Source: Hyalangium minutum (GTDB lineage Bacteria; Myxococcota; Myxococcia; Myxococcales; Myxococcaceae). Taken from it: a stretch of DNA of 64,000 bases. Shown here piece by piece: positions 55,773 through 64,000 of the stretch. The notes beneath the pieces were generated by a model. It saw only the letters and a list, made by a program, of their open reading frames with translations, made no database searches and had not been told where the DNA came from. Numbering within the stretch: position 1 is the first letter of the stretch; each line of letters opens with the position of its first letter. The translations under genes and the position numbers were made by a program. The stretch lies in NCBI RefSeq assembly GCF_000737315.1, contig NZ_JMCB01000002.1:372001-436000 (forward strand), given 5' to 3'.

Positions 55773-56333
55773 ATGGAACGCATCGAGCGAGAGGACGGTG
55801 AGCCGGTGGTGAAGGCGCTGGTGGACAACCACCGGCACTTCCTCGCGTTCCTGGAGCGCCGCGTCGGTAGCCGCGCGGTGGCGGAGGAGCTGCTGCAGAG
55901 CGCCTTCGTGCGGTCGCTGGAAAAGAGCGGCGCGCTACGAGACGAGGAGCGGGCGGTGGCGTGGTTCTACCGGCTGCTGCGTAACGCGCTGGTGGACCAC
56001 TACCGCAAGCAGGCCGCCGAGGGCCGTGCTCTGGAGCACGAGGCGCGCGAGGCCACCGAGGTGGGACCGGATCCGGAGCTGAAACAGGCCGTCTGCGCCT
56101 GCGTGGGCGAGCTGCTCCCCACCCTGAAGCCCGAGTACTCGGAGCTGCTGCGTCAGGTGGAGCTGGAGGAGCGCAGCGTGCCGGAGGCCGCGGCGGCGGT
56201 GGGCATCACCCCGAACAACGCCGGAGTGAGGCTCCACCGGGCGCGTCAGGCGCTCAAGCGGCAGCTAGAGAAGAGCTGCGGCACCTGCGCCACCCACGGC
56301 TGCCTCGACTGCTCCTGCCAACGGCGCTGCTAG
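55773..56333 (+). CDS. CorE-like metal-responsive ECF sigma factor
   Basis: AEELLQSAF, WFYRLLRN sigma2; CAC between sigma2 and sigma4; VRLHRAR; Cys-rich tail CGTCATHGCLDCSCQRRC. Confidence 0.85.
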   Translation: MERIEREDGEPVVKALVDNHRHFLAFLERRVGSRAVAEELLQSAFVRSLEKSGALRDEERAVAWFYRLLRNALVDHYRKQAAEGRALEHEAREATEVGPDPELKQAVCACVGELLPTLKPEYSELLRQVELEERSVPEAAAAVGITPNNAGVRLHRARQALKRQLEKSCGTCATHGCLDCSCQRRC

Positions 56334-56540: not shown

Positions 56541-57599
56541 ATGAGCCGGGTGCTGGAGCAGAAGGTCCTCGATTTGGCGAGCGGGCTGCTCGAATCTCAA
56601 GACCTCGCGCAGTTACAGGCGCGTACGGAGTCCCTCCTAGCGAAGCTCTTTCAAGCAGACCATGTGGCGTTCTGCCGGATGCATCCGGACCTGCCCACAT
56701 TGTTCGATTGGAAGGCGAGCACGACGGGACATTTCCTTCAGAGCTATTACCAGTGGTACCAGAACGACTTCGTCTTCCGTTGGCTCTCGCAACATCCCAA
56801 CATCGCGTCGAGCGACACGGAAATGCTTCGGGGTCGGAAGCTTGAGGAGACAGAGACGTATCGGCGCAGCCGCGAGTCGCATTTGGGCTTGAGGCATGTC
56901 CTCGCGGTTTTGCTGGCTCCCGAGGGCCAGCTGGGCAGTGGTGCCGTCGCGCTGTACACCGATCGAGACAAACCTTTCCCTGAGGAGAGTCGGCGTTTGC
57001 TGCAAAGGCTCACCCCCGCCCTATCGGGGGCGTTCGTGAACTTCGCTCGATTCGGTGCGCTGTCCTCTCACAACCAGCTCCTGGAAGAGCTGCTTGACCA
57101 GCATGGAACGCATACCATCGTGGTGGATGCCCAGCGGCGGGAGGTCTTCCGAATAGGAGCTGTCAGATCGTTGCTTGAAAACTGGTTCCCCTCGCGATCT
57201 GACCGGGACGAGGGGGGAATCCCTCGGGCCTGGAGAGATCGGATGGACGCGCTCATGACGGGGAGCGTCCCTCTCAATCTCCCAGCGGACTCATGGAGGG
57301 AGAAGCGGGGGCTGAGCACCTTGGAGGTGTGCTTCACCAGACTGCCGAGCATCAATGGCCGCAGCCTCTGGGAGTTACGGCTGAAGGAGGTCCATGTGGT
57401 ACCCGAAAAGTGGCGGCAAATACTGACGCCCAGACAGTTCGAGGCGGCTGCCCTCGTTGTTCAGGGCCTGGCAGACAAAGAGATCGCCGACAAGCTCGGT
57501 ATCACCGAGGACACGGCGAAGGACCACGTCCAGTCGGCCTACAAGAGATTGAAGGTATCGGGCCGGGCCGGACTCATCGCCCTGGCCTTGCGGTCCTGA
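56541..57599 (+). CDS. LuxR-type transcriptional regulator with N-terminal GAF/ligand-binding-like domain
   Basis: LTPRQFEAAALVVQGLADKEIADKLGITEDTAKDHV HTH; GGAGG SD. Confidence 0.88.
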   Translation: MSRVLEQKVLDLASGLLESQDLAQLQARTESLLAKLFQADHVAFCRMHPDLPTLFDWKASTTGHFLQSYYQWYQNDFVFRWLSQHPNIASSDTEMLRGRKLEETETYRRSRESHLGLRHVLAVLLAPEGQLGSGAVALYTDRDKPFPEESRRLLQRLTPALSGAFVNFARFGALSSHNQLLEELLDQHGTHTIVVDAQRREVFRIGAVRSLLENWFPSRSDRDEGGIPRAWRDRMDALMTGSVPLNLPADSWREKRGLSTLEVCFTRLPSINGRSLWELRLKEVHVVPEKWRQILTPRQFEAAALVVQGLADKEIADKLGITEDTAKDHVQSAYKRLKVSGRAGLIALALRS

Positions 57600-57707: not shown

Positions 57708-58418
57708 TTAAGAGGGATGCGACGCGTTCTCGGGTGCCCCTTCCGTGAAGAGGCCCAGGTAGAGGACCCGGGTGGTGCGTGCGGACAGCAGCAGCGCGGC
57801 CTGCTCCTCCTCGTTCGTCAGGGGACTTAGCAGTGACGTCAGTTCCTCCACATGCCTCTCATCCGCGGTGCCGTGCGCCTTCAAGAAGGTGACGGCCTTG
57901 CGGATGTTGGGAATGGTGTTGGCCGCGAGCATCCGCTTCACCGACTGGCTGGCGCGGTGCACGGACAGGTACTCCAGCACGTAGGCCGTGCCCAGGAACG
58001 CCTCGGGCCGTCCGCAGCGCGAGGTGAAGCGGTTCCAGGCGACATAGGCAGTGACTGCGGGGGTGGGCACCTGCCGCTCGACGCGCTCGGCCGGCCAACC
58101 CAGGTTCTTCAGGTCCGCCAGCAGCCAGCGCTCATGCCCGCGCTCCTCGTTGGACTTCTGCAGGAGCAGGTCCCCCAATTGGGGGTGCAGGCCCAGGCGC
58201 TTCATGCGCCGGCCCGCCTCGGCCAACAGCGGAGTGGTCCACCGCGCGTAGTGATACGTCTGGATCAGGTAGTGGACGTAGCGGTCCTTGCCAATGCTGC
58301 CATCGAAGAGCCGCCGCGCCTCGGGGTGCGCGTCCAACTCCTCGAGCAGCGTGCGCGCTTCGTGCTCCAGGGCGGTGGGCCAATTCATCATGAAGGGGGA
58401 TTCGGTGTGCGAGTTCAT
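57708..58418 (-). CDS. Heme-oxygenase-like diiron oxidase (iron-containing redox enzyme, PqqC/CADD/UndA superfamily)
   Basis: All-helical; EERGH, YVLEY, HGTADERH metal ligand pattern. Confidence 0.85.
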   Translation of the reverse strand: MNSHTESPFMMNWPTALEHEARTLLEELDAHPEARRLFDGSIGKDRYVHYLIQTYHYARWTTPLLAEAGRRMKRLGLHPQLGDLLLQKSNEERGHERWLLADLKNLGWPAERVERQVPTPAVTAYVAWNRFTSRCGRPEAFLGTAYVLEYLSVHRASQSVKRMLAANTIPNIRKAVTFLKAHGTADERHVEELTSLLSPLTNEEEQAALLLSARTTRVLYLGLFTEGAPENASHPS

Positions 58419-58509: not shown

Positions 58510-59313
58510 TCAGCTGCGCGAGGTGCGGGCGGTCAGCTTGTCGAAGAACTTCCGCGTGCTGGCGGGAACATCATGGAGCGCCGCGACGAGTGGCAGGGAG
58601 AAGCGGCGGAAGCACGCGTCGTAGAGAGGCTCGGCGATGAAACGCGCCCCCAGCTTGCCGGAGAAGAGCGACAACACCCGGGGGAGGCACAGTCCTTCGA
58701 ACTGTCCCTGTCGAGCGCGCTCCCTCTCCTCTGGGGTGTAGATGGGCGCGGCCGGTGCCTCCGGGGGCTTGGGGTAGGCGAGCGTCCGCGCACGCCACTG
58801 GGGGCTCAGCAGGCCCTGGTGGGCCGCCACTTGGAAGAGGATGCGCGCGTCCTCGGCCGAGTCCGTCTCCGTGTTCGCGGAGGCGATCCAGTGCGTCACT
58901 CCCCGGCGGCGGCTCTCCTGATGGAGCCCGGCGTACAGCCACATGAGGACCGCGGAGTGGCGCCAGTCCTTGAGGATGCAGAAGCGGGTGGTCTCGGCGA
59001 ACACCCTGCCCGGACCCTCCAGGTCCGACAGGTCCACCTTGCTCTCCAGATCAATGCCCAGCCGGCCTCCGGTGGCGCGGGCCACCTCGGGGTTGGGCAG
59101 CAACAGGCGGGTGGTGGCCACGGGCACGCCATCCGCGTAGACGATGACGTGGGCGGTGGTCGCCAGCGTGTCGAAGCCATTGTTCTCCCGGGGCACCGCA
59201 TAGGCCGGGCGCTTGAGCAGTTCCAATTCCGTACCGAAGACCTCCCAGCGCACGCGCAGCGCATCATCGAGCTGCTGCTGGGTGGTGGCGATGTGGCAAG
59301 TCAGTGTTGTCAT
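58510..59313 (-). CDS. GNAT N-acyltransferase, FeeM/LuxI-fold (N-acyl amino acid synthase-like)
   Basis: LRVRWEVF, ENNGFD, TAHVIV, ATTRLLLP, ETTRFC; AGGAGG SD. Confidence 0.8.
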   Translation of the reverse strand: MTTLTCHIATTQQQLDDALRVRWEVFGTELELLKRPAYAVPRENNGFDTLATTAHVIVYADGVPVATTRLLLPNPEVARATGGRLGIDLESKVDLSDLEGPGRVFAETTRFCILKDWRHSAVLMWLYAGLHQESRRRGVTHWIASANTETDSAEDARILFQVAAHQGLLSPQWRARTLAYPKPPEAPAAPIYTPEERERARQGQFEGLCLPRVLSLFSGKLGARFIAEPLYDACFRRFSLPLVAALHDVPASTRKFFDKLTARTSRS

Positions 59314-59586
59314 GAACGCCTCCTGACGGCCCGGCGTCGTGCCGTGCCTTCAGGAAAATGTTCGTGGCCAGAGGCTCGAGTTCGCCGAGGCCTTCAGTTT
59401 TTCGGGCGGATAGGACGGGACGGGTAGTGTTTGTCAACCCCCCTAACAGGGTAGAGGCGTCGATCTCCCGAATGCTCCACCCTTGAACATCACCCGTGAG
59501 GTTCTGTCGAACTCCACCGCGCTGCACCGAAGAACCGGGTGAGATGCATTGACTGCATGGGCGACCAGTCCTGGCGAGGAGAGGGG

Positions 59587-60195
59587 ATGCGCAATCCATC
59601 AGCGGAAGAGGAAATGGTCTTGCACCAACGGCTCCTGGAGCGCGATCCGTTGGCCTACTTCGACGTCTTCCCCATGTACATGGAGCGGCTCGCGAAGAAG
59701 CTGGAGGGGCTTGGCTACGACGTCGATATTGCCCGCGATGCCGCCCTCGAGGCGGTCTTGGCCTACCGCAAGGCGCCGGAGCGCTACGATCCCAAGAAGG
59801 TGCACCCGTTCACATACCTTATGGTGTTGGCCAAAAATAAGGCGGTGGACCGGTGGCGCTCCGTCCAGGCACAGGCCCAACGAAATAAAAAGCAGGGCGA
59901 TGTCGAACTCTTGCTGAGGACTCCGAACGATCCCGTGGAGAGGATGGAGACCTACGTGAGGGTACGTCAGCTCGTGGATTTGCTAGAAAAAGGGGGAATT
60001 CTGAACGAGCGGGATCAGGCCATCCTCCGGCTTTTCCTGATGGGGGAAAGCTCAACCGAGGAGAAGGCGAAGGTGTTGCGGTTGCCCCCAATGTCCAAAG
60101 AGGACAGGAAATTGGAGGTGAAGCGGCACCAGGACCGCATCATGAAGTTGCTGGAGCGTTGGTTTCGGAAGGAGGATCCAGATGACGACCCCTGA
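59587..60195 (+). CDS. ECF-like sigma-70 family factor
   Basis: DAALEAV...RYDPKK...FTYLMVLAKNKAVDRWR sigma2; LNERDQAILRL...EEKAKVL sigma4. Confidence 0.8.
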   Translation: MRNPSAEEEMVLHQRLLERDPLAYFDVFPMYMERLAKKLEGLGYDVDIARDAALEAVLAYRKAPERYDPKKVHPFTYLMVLAKNKAVDRWRSVQAQAQRNKKQGDVELLLRTPNDPVERMETYVRVRQLVDLLEKGGILNERDQAILRLFLMGESSTEEKAKVLRLPPMSKEDRKLEVKRHQDRIMKLLERWFRKEDPDDDP

Positions 60196-60559
60196 CTGGC
60201 TCAAGGCCGCGGCTGAACGCAGCGCGGAGGACCCCGCGTCGCTGGCCTATGTCTTCGCGCAATACCGGAAGCATGAAGGCAAGTCCGCCGAGGAGCTTGC
60301 CGCGATGCTGGGCTGCAGCATGAAGGTGCTCGATGAGCTCTCCTTGTGCCGGCGTCCCGAGCCGGATCGCTTCGCCGAACACCTGCGGATGTTTGAGAAG
60401 CGTTTCGCAGTGGATCCTCGCCGGCTCGCGGCGGTGCTCAGGCGGGTCGAGGTGTTGGATCTTCTTCCTGCGGACAAGGAGGGAGGGACTACCGCGCGTG
60501 ATGCCTCCTACCTGCTGGCGGCGCGAGACCACTCCAGCGATGACGAGACGAACTCATGA
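60182..60559 (+). CDS. Small helical protein with XRE-like HTH segment
   Basis: YRKHEGKSAEELAAMLGCS...LSLCRRP; overlaps the sigma gene by 14 bp and the next gene by ATGA. Confidence 0.7.
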   Translation: MTTPDWLKAAAERSAEDPASLAYVFAQYRKHEGKSAEELAAMLGCSMKVLDELSLCRRPEPDRFAEHLRMFEKRFAVDPRRLAAVLRRVEVLDLLPADKEGGTTARDASYLLAARDHSSDDETNS

Positions 60560-61290
60560 GTGGAGGCTGGCTGGAAGAAGCCGTGAAGGACTGCGGCCTG
60601 CCTGCCTCCACCGTGTTTCCCAGGGACCTGGCCGAGGACATTCCCCTGGTGTTGCCGCTCACCGTGGTGCCCCTGCCGGGCCTCACTCCCCGGAAGGGGC
60701 TGGAGTGGCTGGTGTCTCACAAGCGCGCGCACGGAGGGCTCGCGGGGACGAATGACCTCAAGCATGGGTTCACGGTGGCCCATGCGGGTGTGGGAGTGCT
60801 CTTCCTGAACAGCACGGACCTGCCGAACGAGCAGCGCTTCACGCTGGCGCATGAAGTGGCCCATTTCGTCCTCGACCACCTCCAACCCCTGCGCCGGGCT
60901 CTGCATGCGACGGACGGGAGAATCCGCCCGGTGCTGAACGGTGAACGGGAGCCCACGGTCTCTGAACAACTGTTCTCCGTGTTGGAGCGCATTCCCTACC
61001 GCACCCAGGCCAACTTCATGGACCGCAACGACAAGGGAAAGCCCCGCACGGGCCAGGTGATGGAGCTGGAGCAGCGCGCGGATCGCCTGGCCTTCGAGTT
61101 GTTGGCGCCTCGGCAGGAGCTTCTGCCACTGCTCAACCGCGCGGGGCGGGAGGAACTGGAGGCCCACCTCGTCTCCCGCTTCGGGCTGCCAGTGAAGGAA
61201 GCGCGAACCTACGCGTGGTGGCTGCTGAGGGAGCGGCCTTCCCGGCGTCCCTTCCTGACGTGCGTAACGAATGATGAGGAGCGTGACTGA
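60556..61290 (+). CDS. ImmA/IrrE family zinc metallopeptidase
   Basis: EQRFTLAHEVAHF (HExxH) and ELEQRADRLAFELLAP motifs. Confidence 0.9.
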   Translation: MSGGWLEEAVKDCGLPASTVFPRDLAEDIPLVLPLTVVPLPGLTPRKGLEWLVSHKRAHGGLAGTNDLKHGFTVAHAGVGVLFLNSTDLPNEQRFTLAHEVAHFVLDHLQPLRRALHATDGRIRPVLNGEREPTVSEQLFSVLERIPYRTQANFMDRNDKGKPRTGQVMELEQRADRLAFELLAPRQELLPLLNRAGREELEAHLVSRFGLPVKEARTYAWWLLRERPSRRPFLTCVTNDEERD

Positions 61291-62471
61291 TGGTGGCTCG
61301 TAGTGGCGCAGGGGGACCGGACCGCTTCATTGGAGATGATGACTACCGGTCGAGCTTCAAGGAGGACTTGGGGTCCACGCTGGATCTCAACAACTGGTCG
61401 ACGGGACTGGACGTCGAGAAGCTGGTTGCCGACATCCGGTCCCAGATCTCCCATTCGGCGACAGCCGAGGAGAGCATCCAGAAGACTGTCCGCACCGAGG
61501 TTCTTCGCAAGCTCAAGGAGTACTCCAAGCTCGACGTGGCGGGTGTCTATCCGGCCAGTGAGGAGCGGCTGCGGACAGTGTTCGAGGCGTTGTTGTTCCC
61601 GGGACGGGTCGAGGCCGTGACCAGCGTTGTCGCCTCTCATGACAGCTTGCCCCTGGGAATCACCCAGCTGGGTGTCGCCGTCGTTGGCTATAACGGCACG
61701 TCTGGAACGTTCTCCCAGCGGCTCTTCCGCAAGGAACTGTCCACGGAGGACGAGAATCCAGTCCAAGCCGCCATGGAGTGCATTCGCGAGCGGCACGAGC
61801 GCTCCGGGATGGGGCGCCGCGACATGCTGTCCAAGCTCGCGCGCCGGGGACTTCGGGACTACGCCGAGCGGGCCATCCTCCTGGACAAGGCCCAGGCGGA
61901 GTGGCGCATCGGCCAGGGCAATCCCTGCTCCCAGGAATTGCTCTCCGGTTCAGGCTATCCCCGCCTGCTGATGGCCTCGCTCGAGATGCTGAGCAGGCTC
62001 ATTGGAGGGCACAAGAAGTTCGTGTTCGTCCCTCATGCCCTGGAAGAGCGAGGTTACCTGACGCTCGGACACGCTCTTCGGGCCGGTGAATACGCCATCA
62101 TCCAGACGCTCGAGTCCGACAGTGCCTACTTCGTCGAGCGGTGGAGCTATCCCGATGAGCAGCTCAGGGACAAGGCGCTCGAGTTCGTGAGGAAGTATTG
62201 CAGGGACATCCTCATTGGTCTCTTCCGGTCCTCCGAACACGCGCCCCCTTCTCTCTTCTTCGCGCACCGGGAGCACGTGCACGTCGCGGCACACATCGTG
62301 ATGGCGGACAGTCTCATCCACCCCAAACGAGGTTTTCCCATGCTGCTCGAAGTCGCGGATTCCTCCTGCAGGGGCGTGTTTGGCACGGACTCCTTCCAAG
62401 GGCTTGTCCAGGACGCCTACACGCGCGCGGGTGGCAAGTACGAGTACTTCAACGAGCGGCACTGGCGGTAG
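61290..62471 (+). CDS. NurA-like protein (putative, atypical active site)
   Basis: HDSLPLGITQLGV, YAERAIL, GFPMLLEVAD (cf. the NurA GYP-L-AH/D motif); directly upstream of a HerA ATPase; TGATG overlap with immA. Confidence 0.55.
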   Translation: MVARSGAGGPDRFIGDDDYRSSFKEDLGSTLDLNNWSTGLDVEKLVADIRSQISHSATAEESIQKTVRTEVLRKLKEYSKLDVAGVYPASEERLRTVFEALLFPGRVEAVTSVVASHDSLPLGITQLGVAVVGYNGTSGTFSQRLFRKELSTEDENPVQAAMECIRERHERSGMGRRDMLSKLARRGLRDYAERAILLDKAQAEWRIGQGNPCSQELLSGSGYPRLLMASLEMLSRLIGGHKKFVFVPHALEERGYLTLGHALRAGEYAIIQTLESDSAYFVERWSYPDEQLRDKALEFVRKYCRDILIGLFRSSEHAPPSLFFAHREHVHVAAHIVMADSLIHPKRGFPMLLEVADSSCRGVFGTDSFQGLVQDAYTRAGGKYEYFNERHWR

Positions 62472-62477
62472 CGGGAG

Positions 62478-64000
62478 ATGGAAGACATGGCGGATGAGAA
62501 TTTGCCGAAGTTATCGGGGGTATCCCAGGGCAACAGTCCCTCGCGAGCGGTGGGGGGAGATCCCCGAGAGGTTCCTCGCTCCGCTGGAGGGGGCCTGCCT
62601 GAAAGGCCTGTGCGTCTGGGAGCCGCGGTAGGAGCCATGGGGCAAGGTCGGCCGCCTGAGGCGACGACCCTTCCGGCCGCTGGCACACGCCAGGCACCTC
62701 GGCCCCCTGTTCGGGAGACTGCCACTCCGGGCAAGCCCGTACCTTCTCCGGCCGCGAGCGCACCTCGGAGCGAGTCCCCACGTCCCGCACAACCGGCAGG
62801 AGTCCGGGCCCAGCAGCCTCCGCGGCCCGACGGCAGCCCCAAAGAGGTTCTCCAGAGGCTTCCTGAGGCGGAAGCCCATGCGTTCACCGAGCTGCGCTCC
62901 CAGGCGAATGCGGCAGCGGCGGAACTGAACCCCGAGCTCGAGAACGCAGTGGGGTTCACTCATTTCGACACCGCGTCGAGCCAGGACAACCTCATCACCG
63001 TGCTGATGACGCGGGCTGATCTGCACAAGTTGCCCTCGCAGACACTCGTGCGGGTGAAGTCCCTGGAAGACAAGCGCTCCTACCTGGGCGTGGTCGTCCG
63101 CGGCCCCTTCTCCGAGCCGGATGCCGTGGCCGCCAACTCCAACATCGCCGTGGGCGTGGTCGTCCAGGGCAAGAAGCTCTCCTTTACCTTTGATTACCAC
63201 GGCCGGGCCGAGATCGAGATCCTTGGCGAGGAGAACGACGGCAAGGTGCTTCCCCCCGGCCACCGCCCGCGCCCCAAGAGCCCCGTCTTCCTGCTGGATG
63301 ACGAAGAGAGCGAGCACGTCCTGGGGATGAAGGGAGAACTGTGTCTTGGAATGGTCGTGGGCTACAAGCAGATGGAGGCGCGCATCGACGCCCTGGACAA
63401 GTCCATCCTGCCCCGCCATACGGGCATCATCGGGACCACCGGCGGTGGCAAGTCCACCACCGTCGCGACGCTCATCCACCGGGCCCAGTCCGCTGGAGTC
63501 GCCACCATCGTCTTCGATGTGGAAGGTGAATACACCCATGTGGACCAGGCCACCGACGAGCCGACGATGCTCGCGGCACTCCAGCGCAGGAAGCAGCGGC
63601 CCGAGGGGGTGAAGGATCTGCACATCCATCACCTGATAGGCCGTGACACCCGCAACCGCCGTCATAAGCACCGGCATCCCTTCGCGTTGAGCTTCTCGAG
63701 CCTCTCACCCCATGCCATCGCGGAGATTCTCGAGATGACGGACGCGCAGCAGGAGCGCTTCCACAAGGCCTACGAGGTCACCAAGCTGCTGTTGGAGGAT
63801 CTGAAGATCTTCCCGAAGACTCCCGAAGAGCAGCAGCAGTTGATGGAACTCGATGAGCTCTCCACGGGCTATCCGCGCATGACTCTCGAGCACCTCTTGG
63901 ATGTCGTGAGCACGTACATCTACGTCCTGAGCAGTGAGGGAAGGGCTGAGAGCAAGACCAAGACCAAAGGATCCTCCCGGCAGGCCCCGGTGCCCGGCGA
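62478..64000 (+). CDS. herA: HerA/DUF87-family ATPase, truncated by the window end
   Basis: Hand-translated frame with no stop: Pro-rich N-terminus, HAS-barrel-like region (LVRVKS...YLGVV...PRPKSPVFL), PRHTGIIGTTGGGKST (Walker A 63432-63455), IVFDVEGEY (63513). Confidence 0.85.
   Translation, partial: MEDMADENLPKLSGVSQGNSPSRAVGGDPREVPRSAGGGLPERPVRLGAAVGAMGQGRPPEATTLPAAGTRQAPRPPVRETATPGKPVPSPAASAPRSESPRPAQPAGVRAQQPPRPDGSPKEVLQRLPEAEAHAFTELRSQANAAAAELNPELENAVGFTHFDTASSQDNLITVLMTRADLHKLPSQTLVRVKSLEDKRSYLGVVVRGPFSEPDAVAANSNIAVGVVVQGKKLSFTFDYHGRAEIEILGEENDGKVLPPGHRPRPKSPVFLLDDEESEHVLGMKGELCLGMVVGYKQMEARIDALDKSILPRHTGIIGTTGGGKSTTVATLIHRAQSAGVATIVFDVEGEYTHVDQATDEPTMLAALQRRKQRPEGVKDLHIHHLIGRDTRNRRHKHRHPFALSFSSLSPHAIAEILEMTDAQQERFHKAYEVTKLLLEDLKIFPKTPEEQQQLMELDELSTGYPRMTLEHLLDVVSTYIYVLSSEGRAESKTKTKGSSRQAPVPG

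Follow-up and report, generated by a model that had tools for sequence, protein, structure and literature searches.

A conserved sigma factor-peptidase-NurA-HerA-like cassette in Hyalangium minutum as a candidate system against foreign DNA

What is the role of an operon that joins a sigma factor of the extracytoplasmic function (ECF) type to a zinc peptidase and a HerA-type ATPase? Such an operon occupies positions 59587-64000 of a 64-kb stretch of Hyalangium minutum DNA (hereafter the window; G+C 64-73%), which belongs to contig JMCB01000002.1 of assembly GCA_000737315.1, where the 393-aa product of 61290-62471 is encoded. A reading of the letters alone (the original prediction) had taken it for a new system, in which DNA damage or phage infection sets off a proteolytic switch, the sigma factor then drives a HerA machine for defence or repair, and further effectors follow downstream. 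Our follow-up analysis upholds the conserved system and its sigma-driven module, and does not support the damage trigger or the downstream effectors. We put a probability of about 0.6 on a sigma-gated, proteolytically gated NurA-HerA system that would act against foreign DNA. The operon is the myxobacterial, methylase-free version of a cassette that is widespread and apparently undescribed and that consists of an ECF sigma factor, an XRE-like protein, an M78 peptidase, a NurA-like nuclease and a HerA translocase, preceded in most lineages by a DNA methyltransferase.

A translationally coupled unit in several phyla

The five open reading frames of 59587-64000 all lie on the forward strand and run in one direction. 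Gene 1 (59587-60195, +; 202 aa) encodes the ECF-type sigma factor and is orthologous to Myxococcus xanthus MXAN_4535; gene 2 (60182-60559, +; 125 aa) encodes a small XRE-like helical protein; gene 3 (60556-61290, +; 244 aa) a zinc metallopeptidase of the M78 (ImmA/IrrE/CapP-like) family; gene 4 (61290-62471, +; 393 aa) a NurA-like putative nuclease; and gene 5 a HerA/FtsK-type ATPase, of which the first 507 codons (62478-64000, +) precede the cut at the window end. Reading the junctions base by base reproduced every overlap and gap that had been described. Genes 1 and 2 overlap by 14 bp (ATG at 60182, TGA at 60193-60195), genes 2 and 3 by ATGA (60556-60559), genes 3 and 4 meet in TGATG (61288-61292), and a 6-bp gap, CGGGAG, separates gene 4 from the ATG of gene 5 at 62478; the public annotation starts HerA at the ATG at 62487. 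As predicted, the operon passes the window end: in L001, the Hyalangium locus that extends beyond the window (window coordinate = L001 + 51289), HerA continues for another 246 codons to a total of 753 aa.

To place the cassette among other genomes, one genome per species was scanned with an alignment of gene 4, which gave 51 loci, and tblastn was run with all window proteins. The order sigma-helix-turn-helix (HTH)-M78-NurA-HerA was found at about 45 of the 51 genome loci (Myxococcota and Chloroflexota) and, within a metagenome set of 80 loci, at 44 of the 45 eligible ones. The proposal that the sigma/HTH/protease triad and NurA-HerA belong together is thus decisively borne out by neighbourhood conservation. 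The -14 and -4 overlaps hardly vary among related loci, which places the five-gene arrangement far beyond chance, and gene 2 is translationally coupled to the sigma and M78 genes in all loci. The five genes are one conserved, translationally coupled unit.

The closest relatives of the window's cassette are in Hyalangium, Archangium and Stigmatella. Genera that carry it include Hyalangium, Archangium, Cystobacter, Myxococcus (including M. xanthus), Corallococcus, Pyxidicoccus, Vitiosangium and Sorangium, as well as Citreicoccus with two copies; a metagenome-assembled genome (MAG) of Chloroflexota likewise has it, and at the Chloroflexota locus L048 all five genes stand between unrelated flanks. 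The distribution is patchy over several phyla, with two copies in some genomes. When the NurA-like protein of contig L053 was used as a query, at least 2,246 clusters at 90% identity were retrieved, nearly all of them unnamed metagenomic sequences without Pfam domains. The NurA-like profile, searched exhaustively, brought up 599 representatives at the 50% identity level; for 210 of these the match was below 1e-30. Named members belong to Chloroflexota/Dehalococcoidia, Terriglobales, Eisenbacteria and a Rhodospirillales MAG, and Acidobacteriota is among the phyla.

While the original prediction recognised the conserved system, it missed a sixth gene as well as the HTH-NurA fusions described below. 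An N6/N4 DNA methyltransferase is encoded at 47 of the 48 loci with enough upstream DNA, and in 42 it lies directly upstream and co-oriented. Outside Cystobacterineae and Sorangium, the cassette is a six-gene one with the methyltransferase added. No methyltransferase homologue was found in the 64-kb window or at the other Cystobacterineae and Sorangium loci; two Myxococcota MAGs (L031 and L032) carry the gene.

The neighbours of several copies are restriction or mobile-element genes. On L053, an IMG/VR contig, the full cassette lies between a type I restriction-modification (R-M) system and a convergent DNA methylase with a large serine recombinase. GmrSD and Tn7-like genes adjoin L139, PIN/Tsp45I/methylase genes adjoin L058, and a UvrD-Cas4-like gene and a 1011-aa methylase adjoin L056. 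A search of IMG/VR with the NurA-like profile returned nothing. A phage origin was considered and rejected, as the only IMG/VR contig found with the M78 profile resembles not a phage but a defence island that includes a recombinase.

The two effector candidates differ in how clearly they are assigned. The window part of gene 5 matches DUF87/HerA at 1e-19, and its Walker A motif, GTTGGGKS at 63438-63461, is intact as originally noted. Full-length HerA (about 753-756 codons) also has an intact Walker B motif (ALIIIEEAH), and the L001 protein matches DUF87 at 4.1e-22 and HerA_C at 7e-14; its best NCBIfam matches are HerA models, far under their cut-offs (99.7 bits versus 800). Myxobacterial HerA proteins begin with a Pro/Ala/Arg-rich low-complexity segment of about 130 residues (62478-62870; L001 11198-11590), and those of other phyla, at about 615 aa, are without it. 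Gene 4 has no match in Pfam (even at E 1), NCBIfam or PADLOC, the Pfam NurA model (PF09376) included, and the NurA-like profile found only noise among PDB sequences. The AlphaFold model of gene 4 (predicted local distance difference test score, pLDDT, 68.5) has an RNase H-like fold. Its four best PDB folds are all NurA (2ygk, 3tal, 9x1m and 3tai), followed by Argonaute PIWI, and the best NurA match has E 1.4e-4 and template-modelling (TM) scores of 0.34/0.40. Residues E108, Q126, E193, E267, H326, H331 and D340 are invariant across phyla. On this model, NurA-like is a reasonable but not secure assignment.

Further effectors had been expected downstream. The two genes 3' of HerA, a nucleotide-kinase/PurA-PurZ-like fusion and a DUF7002 gene, occur only in the closest (Hyalangium-like) relatives, and no copy of the promoter motif described below follows HerA in this genome. 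We therefore rejected them as members of the system, and the conserved unit ends at HerA. The fusion protein (544 aa; L001 13572-15880 together with the DUF7002 gene, which it overlaps) combines AAA_33 with a short adenylosuccinate-synthetase/PurZ-like domain, scoring 271 bits with PRK04293 and 217 bits with PurZ, below the cut-off of 300. Together, the two genes may have a separate role in nucleotide modification or defence.

The sigma factor and its putative promoter motif

The similarity of gene 1 to sigma factors is weak but real. Sigma70_r2 matches at 26.3 bits (cut-off 24) and TIGR02937 at 39.9 bits, under its cut-off of 42.9, and the Pfam scan gave no region-4 match. The sigma family profile aligns with SigE (2q1z) over residues 18-166 at 1.2e-8 and also matches SigK (4nqw), which the cross-phylum sigma profile finds at 2.2e-6. 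These matches point to an ECF (group 4) protein of the sigma-70 type, of about 200 aa, with sigma2 and sigma4 and without sigma3 or sigma1.

Alignment of the myxobacterial regions upstream of the sigma gene, Sorangium included, brought out the motif cGTCGAACTC-N13-CGAAgga some 80-89 nt 5' of the start codon, and the motif is present at the equivalent position in about 42 of 46 myxobacterial loci. In the window, an exact match, GTCGAACTC-N13-CGAA, lies at 59506-59531 (+), about 80 nt 5' of the sigma start, as a putative ECF-type promoter. A second exact copy lies at 59902-59927 (+), inside the sigma gene itself, in the codons V-E-L...P-N of the sigma2-sigma4 linker. A pattern search of the window found these two exact copies and one with 1 mismatch, versus 0.24 expected.

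The internal copy is seen again in many loci, where it overlaps the linker codons V-E-L...P-K/N. All 36 distinct sequences use GAA for its Glu, whereas GAA makes up 22% of the Glu codons of these genes (1.7e-24), and T is the last letter of the codon preceding Pro in 39 of 40, versus a background of 9%; these binomial figures ignore phylogeny. Such codon choice indicates that selection on synonymous codons maintains the internal copy. It is likely a sigma-dependent promoter for genes 2-5, while the upstream copy is a putative autoregulatory promoter for the whole operon in the myxobacterial version. Since a conserved Met/Leu-Glu follows about 16 nt past the internal copy, the latter could conceivably give rise to a product of sigma4 alone or to a leaderless transcript of genes 2-5.

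The motif is shared by the other lineages, with the overall consensus GTCGAACTY-N13-(C/G)GAA(TA). In 86 non-myxobacterial loci (820 kb), the same -35 element is combined with a GGAA(TA) -10 element, and 113 copies lie on the operon strand versus 1 on the opposite strand. Most of them (72 copies) are in the M78-NurA interval or the last 50 nt of the M78 gene; 20 are in the sigma linker, and about 15 lie directly after HerA or ahead of the methylase region. Of 64 distinct sites, 57 have a spacer of 13 nt, and no conservation extends into the flanks. In more than 100 loci the motif keeps to one strand and to set positions, and its AAC-containing -35 and short -10 elements are as for ECF promoters. 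From its position and conservation, we infer that it is the cognate promoter to which the cassette sigma factor binds. NurA-HerA would then be the main target of this sigma factor, transcribed only when the latter is active. In the window version, in which the M78 gene abuts the NurA gene, the upstream and internal copies would take over the role of the NurA-proximal promoter. The conserved ECF-type promoter thus lends direct support, at the sequence level, to the predicted sigma-driven expression of the HerA module, with recognition by this particular sigma factor as the presumptive part.

Extra copies of the motif are found at some loci. L139 has three in tandem ahead of its sigma gene. The motif occurs downstream of HerA in L065, L083, L088, L090, L100, L101, L105 and L131 and 5' of the methylase in L069, L074 and L078; the gene next to such extra copies is RmuC, an SbcD/SbcC-like pair, DUF2130 or a member of an uncharacterised family of about 435 aa.

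A candidate operator lies at 59435-59458 (no strand assigned), where CAACCCCCCTAACAGGGTAGAGGC is a degenerate inverted-repeat copy of cATACCNCCNNNNGGNGGTAcAGAC. In most Cystobacterineae loci, this inverted repeat stands 55-60 bp 5' of the promoter motif, and it is found in myxobacteria only. The alignment around the NurA promoter contains no conserved operator adjoining it, and no conserved motif was found in the region 5' of the methyltransferase. A scan for generic sigma-70 promoters and terminators was uninformative.

The small XRE-like protein and the peptidase

Gene 3 matches Peptidase_M78 at 4.9e-13 and the PADLOC model capP at 3.6e-9. The HExxH motif is intact, as the original prediction stated: HEVAH occupies residues 99-103 (60850-60864) and is conserved, and so is the third-ligand motif E172-x2-AD-x5-LLAP, which contains the downstream Glu ligand. 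The nearest solved relatives are CapP (7t5t) and IrrE (3dte), both matched by the M78 profile. The alignments to them stop at the catalytic core, and the 244-aa peptidase is without a GAF-like sensor domain.

The small protein encoded between the sigma factor and the peptidase is less easily placed. HTH_31 and HTH_3 stay below threshold (0.02-0.04), and its profile found only DARPin and annexin noise among PDB sequences. The AlphaFold model (pLDDT 77) has six helices (5-94) followed by a disordered C-terminal tail. All Foldseek matches are non-significant (E ~1), and almost all are XRE regulators, including Cop, the N-terminal domain of CapH, SinR, HipB, R-M controller proteins and DdrO, with no anti-sigma domain among them. 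The HxxxCxxC motif, which anti-sigma domains of the ZAS type often have, is missing, only C45 and C56 being conserved. The position and translational coupling of gene 2 fit the arrangement of ECF anti-sigma factors, and an anti-sigma role by way of a novel fold is conceivable. DdiA (MXAN_0633) was considered as the small protein and rejected, as it belongs to a different locus.

Conserved in all lineages are L39-A40, LxLCRxP (53-59) and an AARD motif within an otherwise variable tail. AARD (residues 113-116; 60518-60529, +) is invariant in Myxococcota, Chloroflexota and the metagenomic lineages. Fusions between the small and NurA-like proteins have arisen on at least three occasions. One fusion (P0075/L017/L038), whose members are mutually 50% identical and share the same junction, is without the tail, M78 and HerA; a second (P0028/L141) retains the tail; and a third (P0194/P0226/L139) retains the tail and has its M78 gene relocated upstream. 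In the tail-bearing fusions, which keep M78, AARD lies exactly between the HTH and NurA domains. Thus, the AARD tail and M78 are either both missing (L017 and L038) or both present (L139 and L141). The recurrent fusions suggest that the small protein works with NurA, and the joint loss or retention of tail and M78 suggests that the tail belongs with the protease. The fusion without tail forms a two-gene variant together with the sigma gene (L017 9647-11164; L038 9677-11137). Its copies, from an Archangium MAG and Corallococcus carmarthensis, are 50% identical, which indicates that the variant is maintained and not freshly decayed.

By analogy with related pairs, it is plausible that the small protein is an inhibitor (an anti-sigma factor and/or a subunit that tethers NurA) and the substrate of M78, with AARD as a candidate cleavage or docking site of the peptidase. 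CapP cuts CapH in its C-terminal region at the F82/R83 bond, and IrrE cuts DdrO at a Leu-Arg bond. Since both bonds join a hydrophobic residue to Arg, a cut at or beside AA|RD is a reasonable guess. The N-termini of the small protein (MT.P.WL..AA.RS; 60182-60215) and of M78 (M...WL.EA...; 60556-60590) share a W-L-x2-A helix start, and a common docking partner is possible.

A proposed defence role and its competing explanations

We propose the following model for the cassette. The small XRE-like protein would keep the system off by binding the sigma factor and/or the NurA-like protein. Upon an infection-related cue, M78 would cut the small protein at or near its AARD tail. The freed sigma factor would boost the expression of NurA-HerA and, in myxobacteria, also of itself and genes 2-5. 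NurA-HerA would then load on DNA ends and degrade invading linear DNA, while the methyltransferase, where present, probably marks host DNA as self in the style of R-M systems. Defence is favoured by the link to the methylase, the restriction and mobile-element neighbours, the patchy spread over several phyla and the precedent of HerA in defence.

The original prediction knew of no described system with this composition, and neither PADLOC and NCBIfam nor the literature searched provided one. Scans with PADLOC, Pfam and NCBIfam gave no system-level match, and the small and NurA-like proteins had no match above threshold. The PADLOC models matched in the cassette are HerA, capP-like and methylase only, with none for the sigma factor, the small protein or the NurA-like protein. 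We found no description of the cassette in the full-text literature searched, which leaves out most subscription journals.

The control unit resembles CapH-CapP, DdrO-IrrE and ImmR-ImmA, in which an M78 peptidase with HExxH and a downstream Glu is likewise encoded beside a small XRE-like protein, 5' of an effector operon. CapP and IrrE cleave the C-terminal region of their partners, and the invariant AARD of the cassette lies in a C-terminal tail. However, the cassette interposes a sigma factor, its effector genes have an ECF-type promoter, and its 244-aa M78 is without the GAF-like domain by which CapP senses single-stranded DNA (ssDNA). In contrast to those pairs, the cassette orthologues of M. 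xanthus are not induced by mitomycin C, and fusions of the small protein with the effector nuclease recur. With SIR2-HerA, DUF4297-HerA (Gao_Her) and HerA-NurA, the cassette shares a HerA/FtsK-type ATPase beside an effector partner, which here is NurA-like by fold. Unlike in SIR2-HerA and DUF4297-HerA, the partner has no SIR2 or DUF4297 match, and the PADLOC HerA models match HerA alone. Unlike archaeal and Deinococcus HerA-NurA, it is not accompanied by Mre11-Rad50 (SbcCD) genes in the window or the myxobacterial loci, and SbcD/SbcC-like genes lie 3' of HerA in only 2 of 86 relatives. The sigma/XRE/M78 control unit, plus the methyltransferase in most lineages, is what the cassette adds to these HerA systems.

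Viewed as a wider family, the cassette shares a methyltransferase, an ATPase-nuclease effector and a small XRE-type regulator with MADS (methylation-associated defence system, mad1-8) and with R-M systems under controller (C) proteins. The mad8 model scores 30 bits on the window HerA and 74 bits on that of a relative, the methylases of relatives weakly match mad2, and no other mad model matches in the window or the relatives. In MADS, mad6 and mad7 are mandatory, and a kinase and a specificity subunit are also part of it (bioRxiv 10.1101/2023.03.30.534895). None of these four was found in the cassette, and we rejected an identity with MADS. Compared with C-protein R-M systems, control is by sigma factor and protease and not by a C protein alone, and the window version is methyltransferase-free within 64 kb. 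An ECF sigma factor dedicated to defence genes is known in a myxobacterium from DdvS-DdvA of the M. xanthus CBASS-CRISPR island (PMC11506125, PMC6061681). DdvA, however, is a transmembrane anti-sigma factor, whereas the candidate inhibitor of the cassette is a small cytoplasmic XRE-like protein paired with M78, and the target is NurA-HerA. The Aravind-type papers on 'HerA/FtsK capture systems' do not contain this architecture.

Several observations weigh against a defence system of this kind. The peptidase is without the GAF-like sensor of CapP and IrrE. The window version is without a methyltransferase, stands at a syntenic chromosomal site in many Cystobacterineae and so resembles a domesticated housekeeping module. 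Viral contigs, as listed by IMG/VR, contain just one relative. The fold of the small protein resembles DNA-binding XRE repressors and not known anti-sigma domains, in matches that are statistically weak, and the NurA assignment depends on a medium-confidence model with low TM-scores. In addition, the sigma, protease and HerA proteins are detected in untreated M. xanthus (PMC12288472), so that either the gate works in another way or its 'off' state is leaky.

One possible alternative is a host module for double-strand-break repair or DNA damage, in which an IrrE/DdrO-like switch turns on archaeal-style NurA-HerA end resection via the sigma factor. NurA-HerA is the end-resection pair of archaea and Deinococcus, M78 plus XRE is the IrrE/DdrO architecture, the myxobacterial copy is methylase-free and syntenic in many genera, and the motif in some relatives precedes SbcD/SbcC-like, RmuC and DUF2130 genes, which have recombination or end-processing functions. 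However, the expression data from M. xanthus argue against it. There, MXAN_4535 is annotated as an ECF sigma factor, MXAN_4537 as an IrrE-like metalloprotease and MXAN_4539 as HerA-like, while MXAN_4536 and MXAN_4538 are 'hypothetical'. Under mitomycin C, proteomics recorded log2 changes of -2.5 at 10 h for MXAN_4535 and -2.3 at 5 h for MXAN_4539; MXAN_4537 changed by -1.4, which is not significant by that paper's criteria, and by -3.8 in a lexA mutant (PMC12288472). That these proteins fall or stay flat weakens the repair reading and also the DNA-damage trigger of the original prediction. The methyltransferase at 47 of 48 non-myxobacterial loci, the restriction and mobile-element neighbours, the patchy spread with two copies in some genomes and the missing GAF-like ssDNA sensor domain speak against repair as well, and we regard it as unlikely. 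In an array study, deletion of masABK lowered the MXAN_4536 and MXAN_4538 transcripts 60- and 34-fold (PMC3546991).

A signalling device, in which a product of NurA-HerA end processing activates the peptidase and the freed sigma factor runs a wider regulon, with the operon promoters serving feedback only, is less probable again. The myxobacterial motif copies 5' of and within the sigma gene would fit it as typical ECF autoregulation, as would the presence of the proteins without stress, and the 64-kb window and 20-kb loci leave room for distant target promoters. Nevertheless, the motif stands mostly right before NurA-HerA and adjacent accessory nuclease genes and is almost absent elsewhere in the 820 kb of flanks, and a self-contained cassette moves between phyla into unrelated neighbourhoods. 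We likewise give little credence to a selfish methylase-nuclease module for addiction or inter-element competition on integrative elements, with domesticated or decaying myxobacterial copies, which the associated serine recombinase, integrase fragment and Tn7-like genes, the methylase-plus-nuclease logic, the disrupted copies (L010 and L028) and the reduced two-gene variants (L017 and L038) would suit, because the five myxobacterial genes retain frames, coupling and promoter motifs across genus- to suborder-level divergence, the two-gene variant shows conservation of its own, at 50% identity, and addiction and defence are not mutually exclusive.

Other genes lie near the cassette in the window. 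A LuxR/GerE-type regulator (352 aa; about 56541-57599, +) is encoded 5' of it, and LuxR/GerE paralogues (about 30-35% identity) stand on both sides of the cassette in several Archangium loci (L008, L009, L043 and L052). A divergent pair by the cassette encodes a haem-oxygenase-like/TENA protein (57708-58418, -) and a FeeM-like N-acyltransferase (58510-59313, -); its synteny with the cassette extends to many Cystobacterineae, and the two genes may form a small biosynthetic pair. A second ECF sigma factor (55773-56333, +; 186 aa; Sigma70_r2 and r4_2), with a Cys-rich C-terminal tail, CGTCATHGCLDCSCQRRC, follows CusB/CzcA-type resistance-nodulation-division (RND) efflux and cupredoxin genes. We take it to resemble the metal-sensing CorE-type sigma factors of Myxococcus.

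If the cassette is a defence system, it would add a widespread family to phage defence and a control logic not seen there, in which nuclease expression is licensed by the cassette's own sigma factor, probably freed by proteolysis. A promoter copy within the sigma coding sequence would be a clean case of dual coding. It is tempting to speculate further that the cassette is a mobile immune module with a private sigma factor, an in-gene promoter, an XRE-fold protein that serves as anti-sigma factor and nuclease tether and is cut at AARD, and NurA-HerA as its 'restriction' engine. This fuller picture is tentative and, taken as a whole, rather doubtful on our estimate; if true, no earlier restriction-like system would have been sigma-gated, and NurA-HerA would for the first time be a methylation-associated anti-phage nuclease. 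As the model organism M. xanthus carries the cassette (MXAN_4535-4539), these ideas are directly testable. With a defence role, the ImmA/IrrE/CapP switch would be extended from the cutting of repressors to the cutting of a sigma-factor inhibitor, a natural, portable and orthogonal sigma-promoter pair would be at hand, and archaeal-type NurA-HerA end resection would be tied to immunity.

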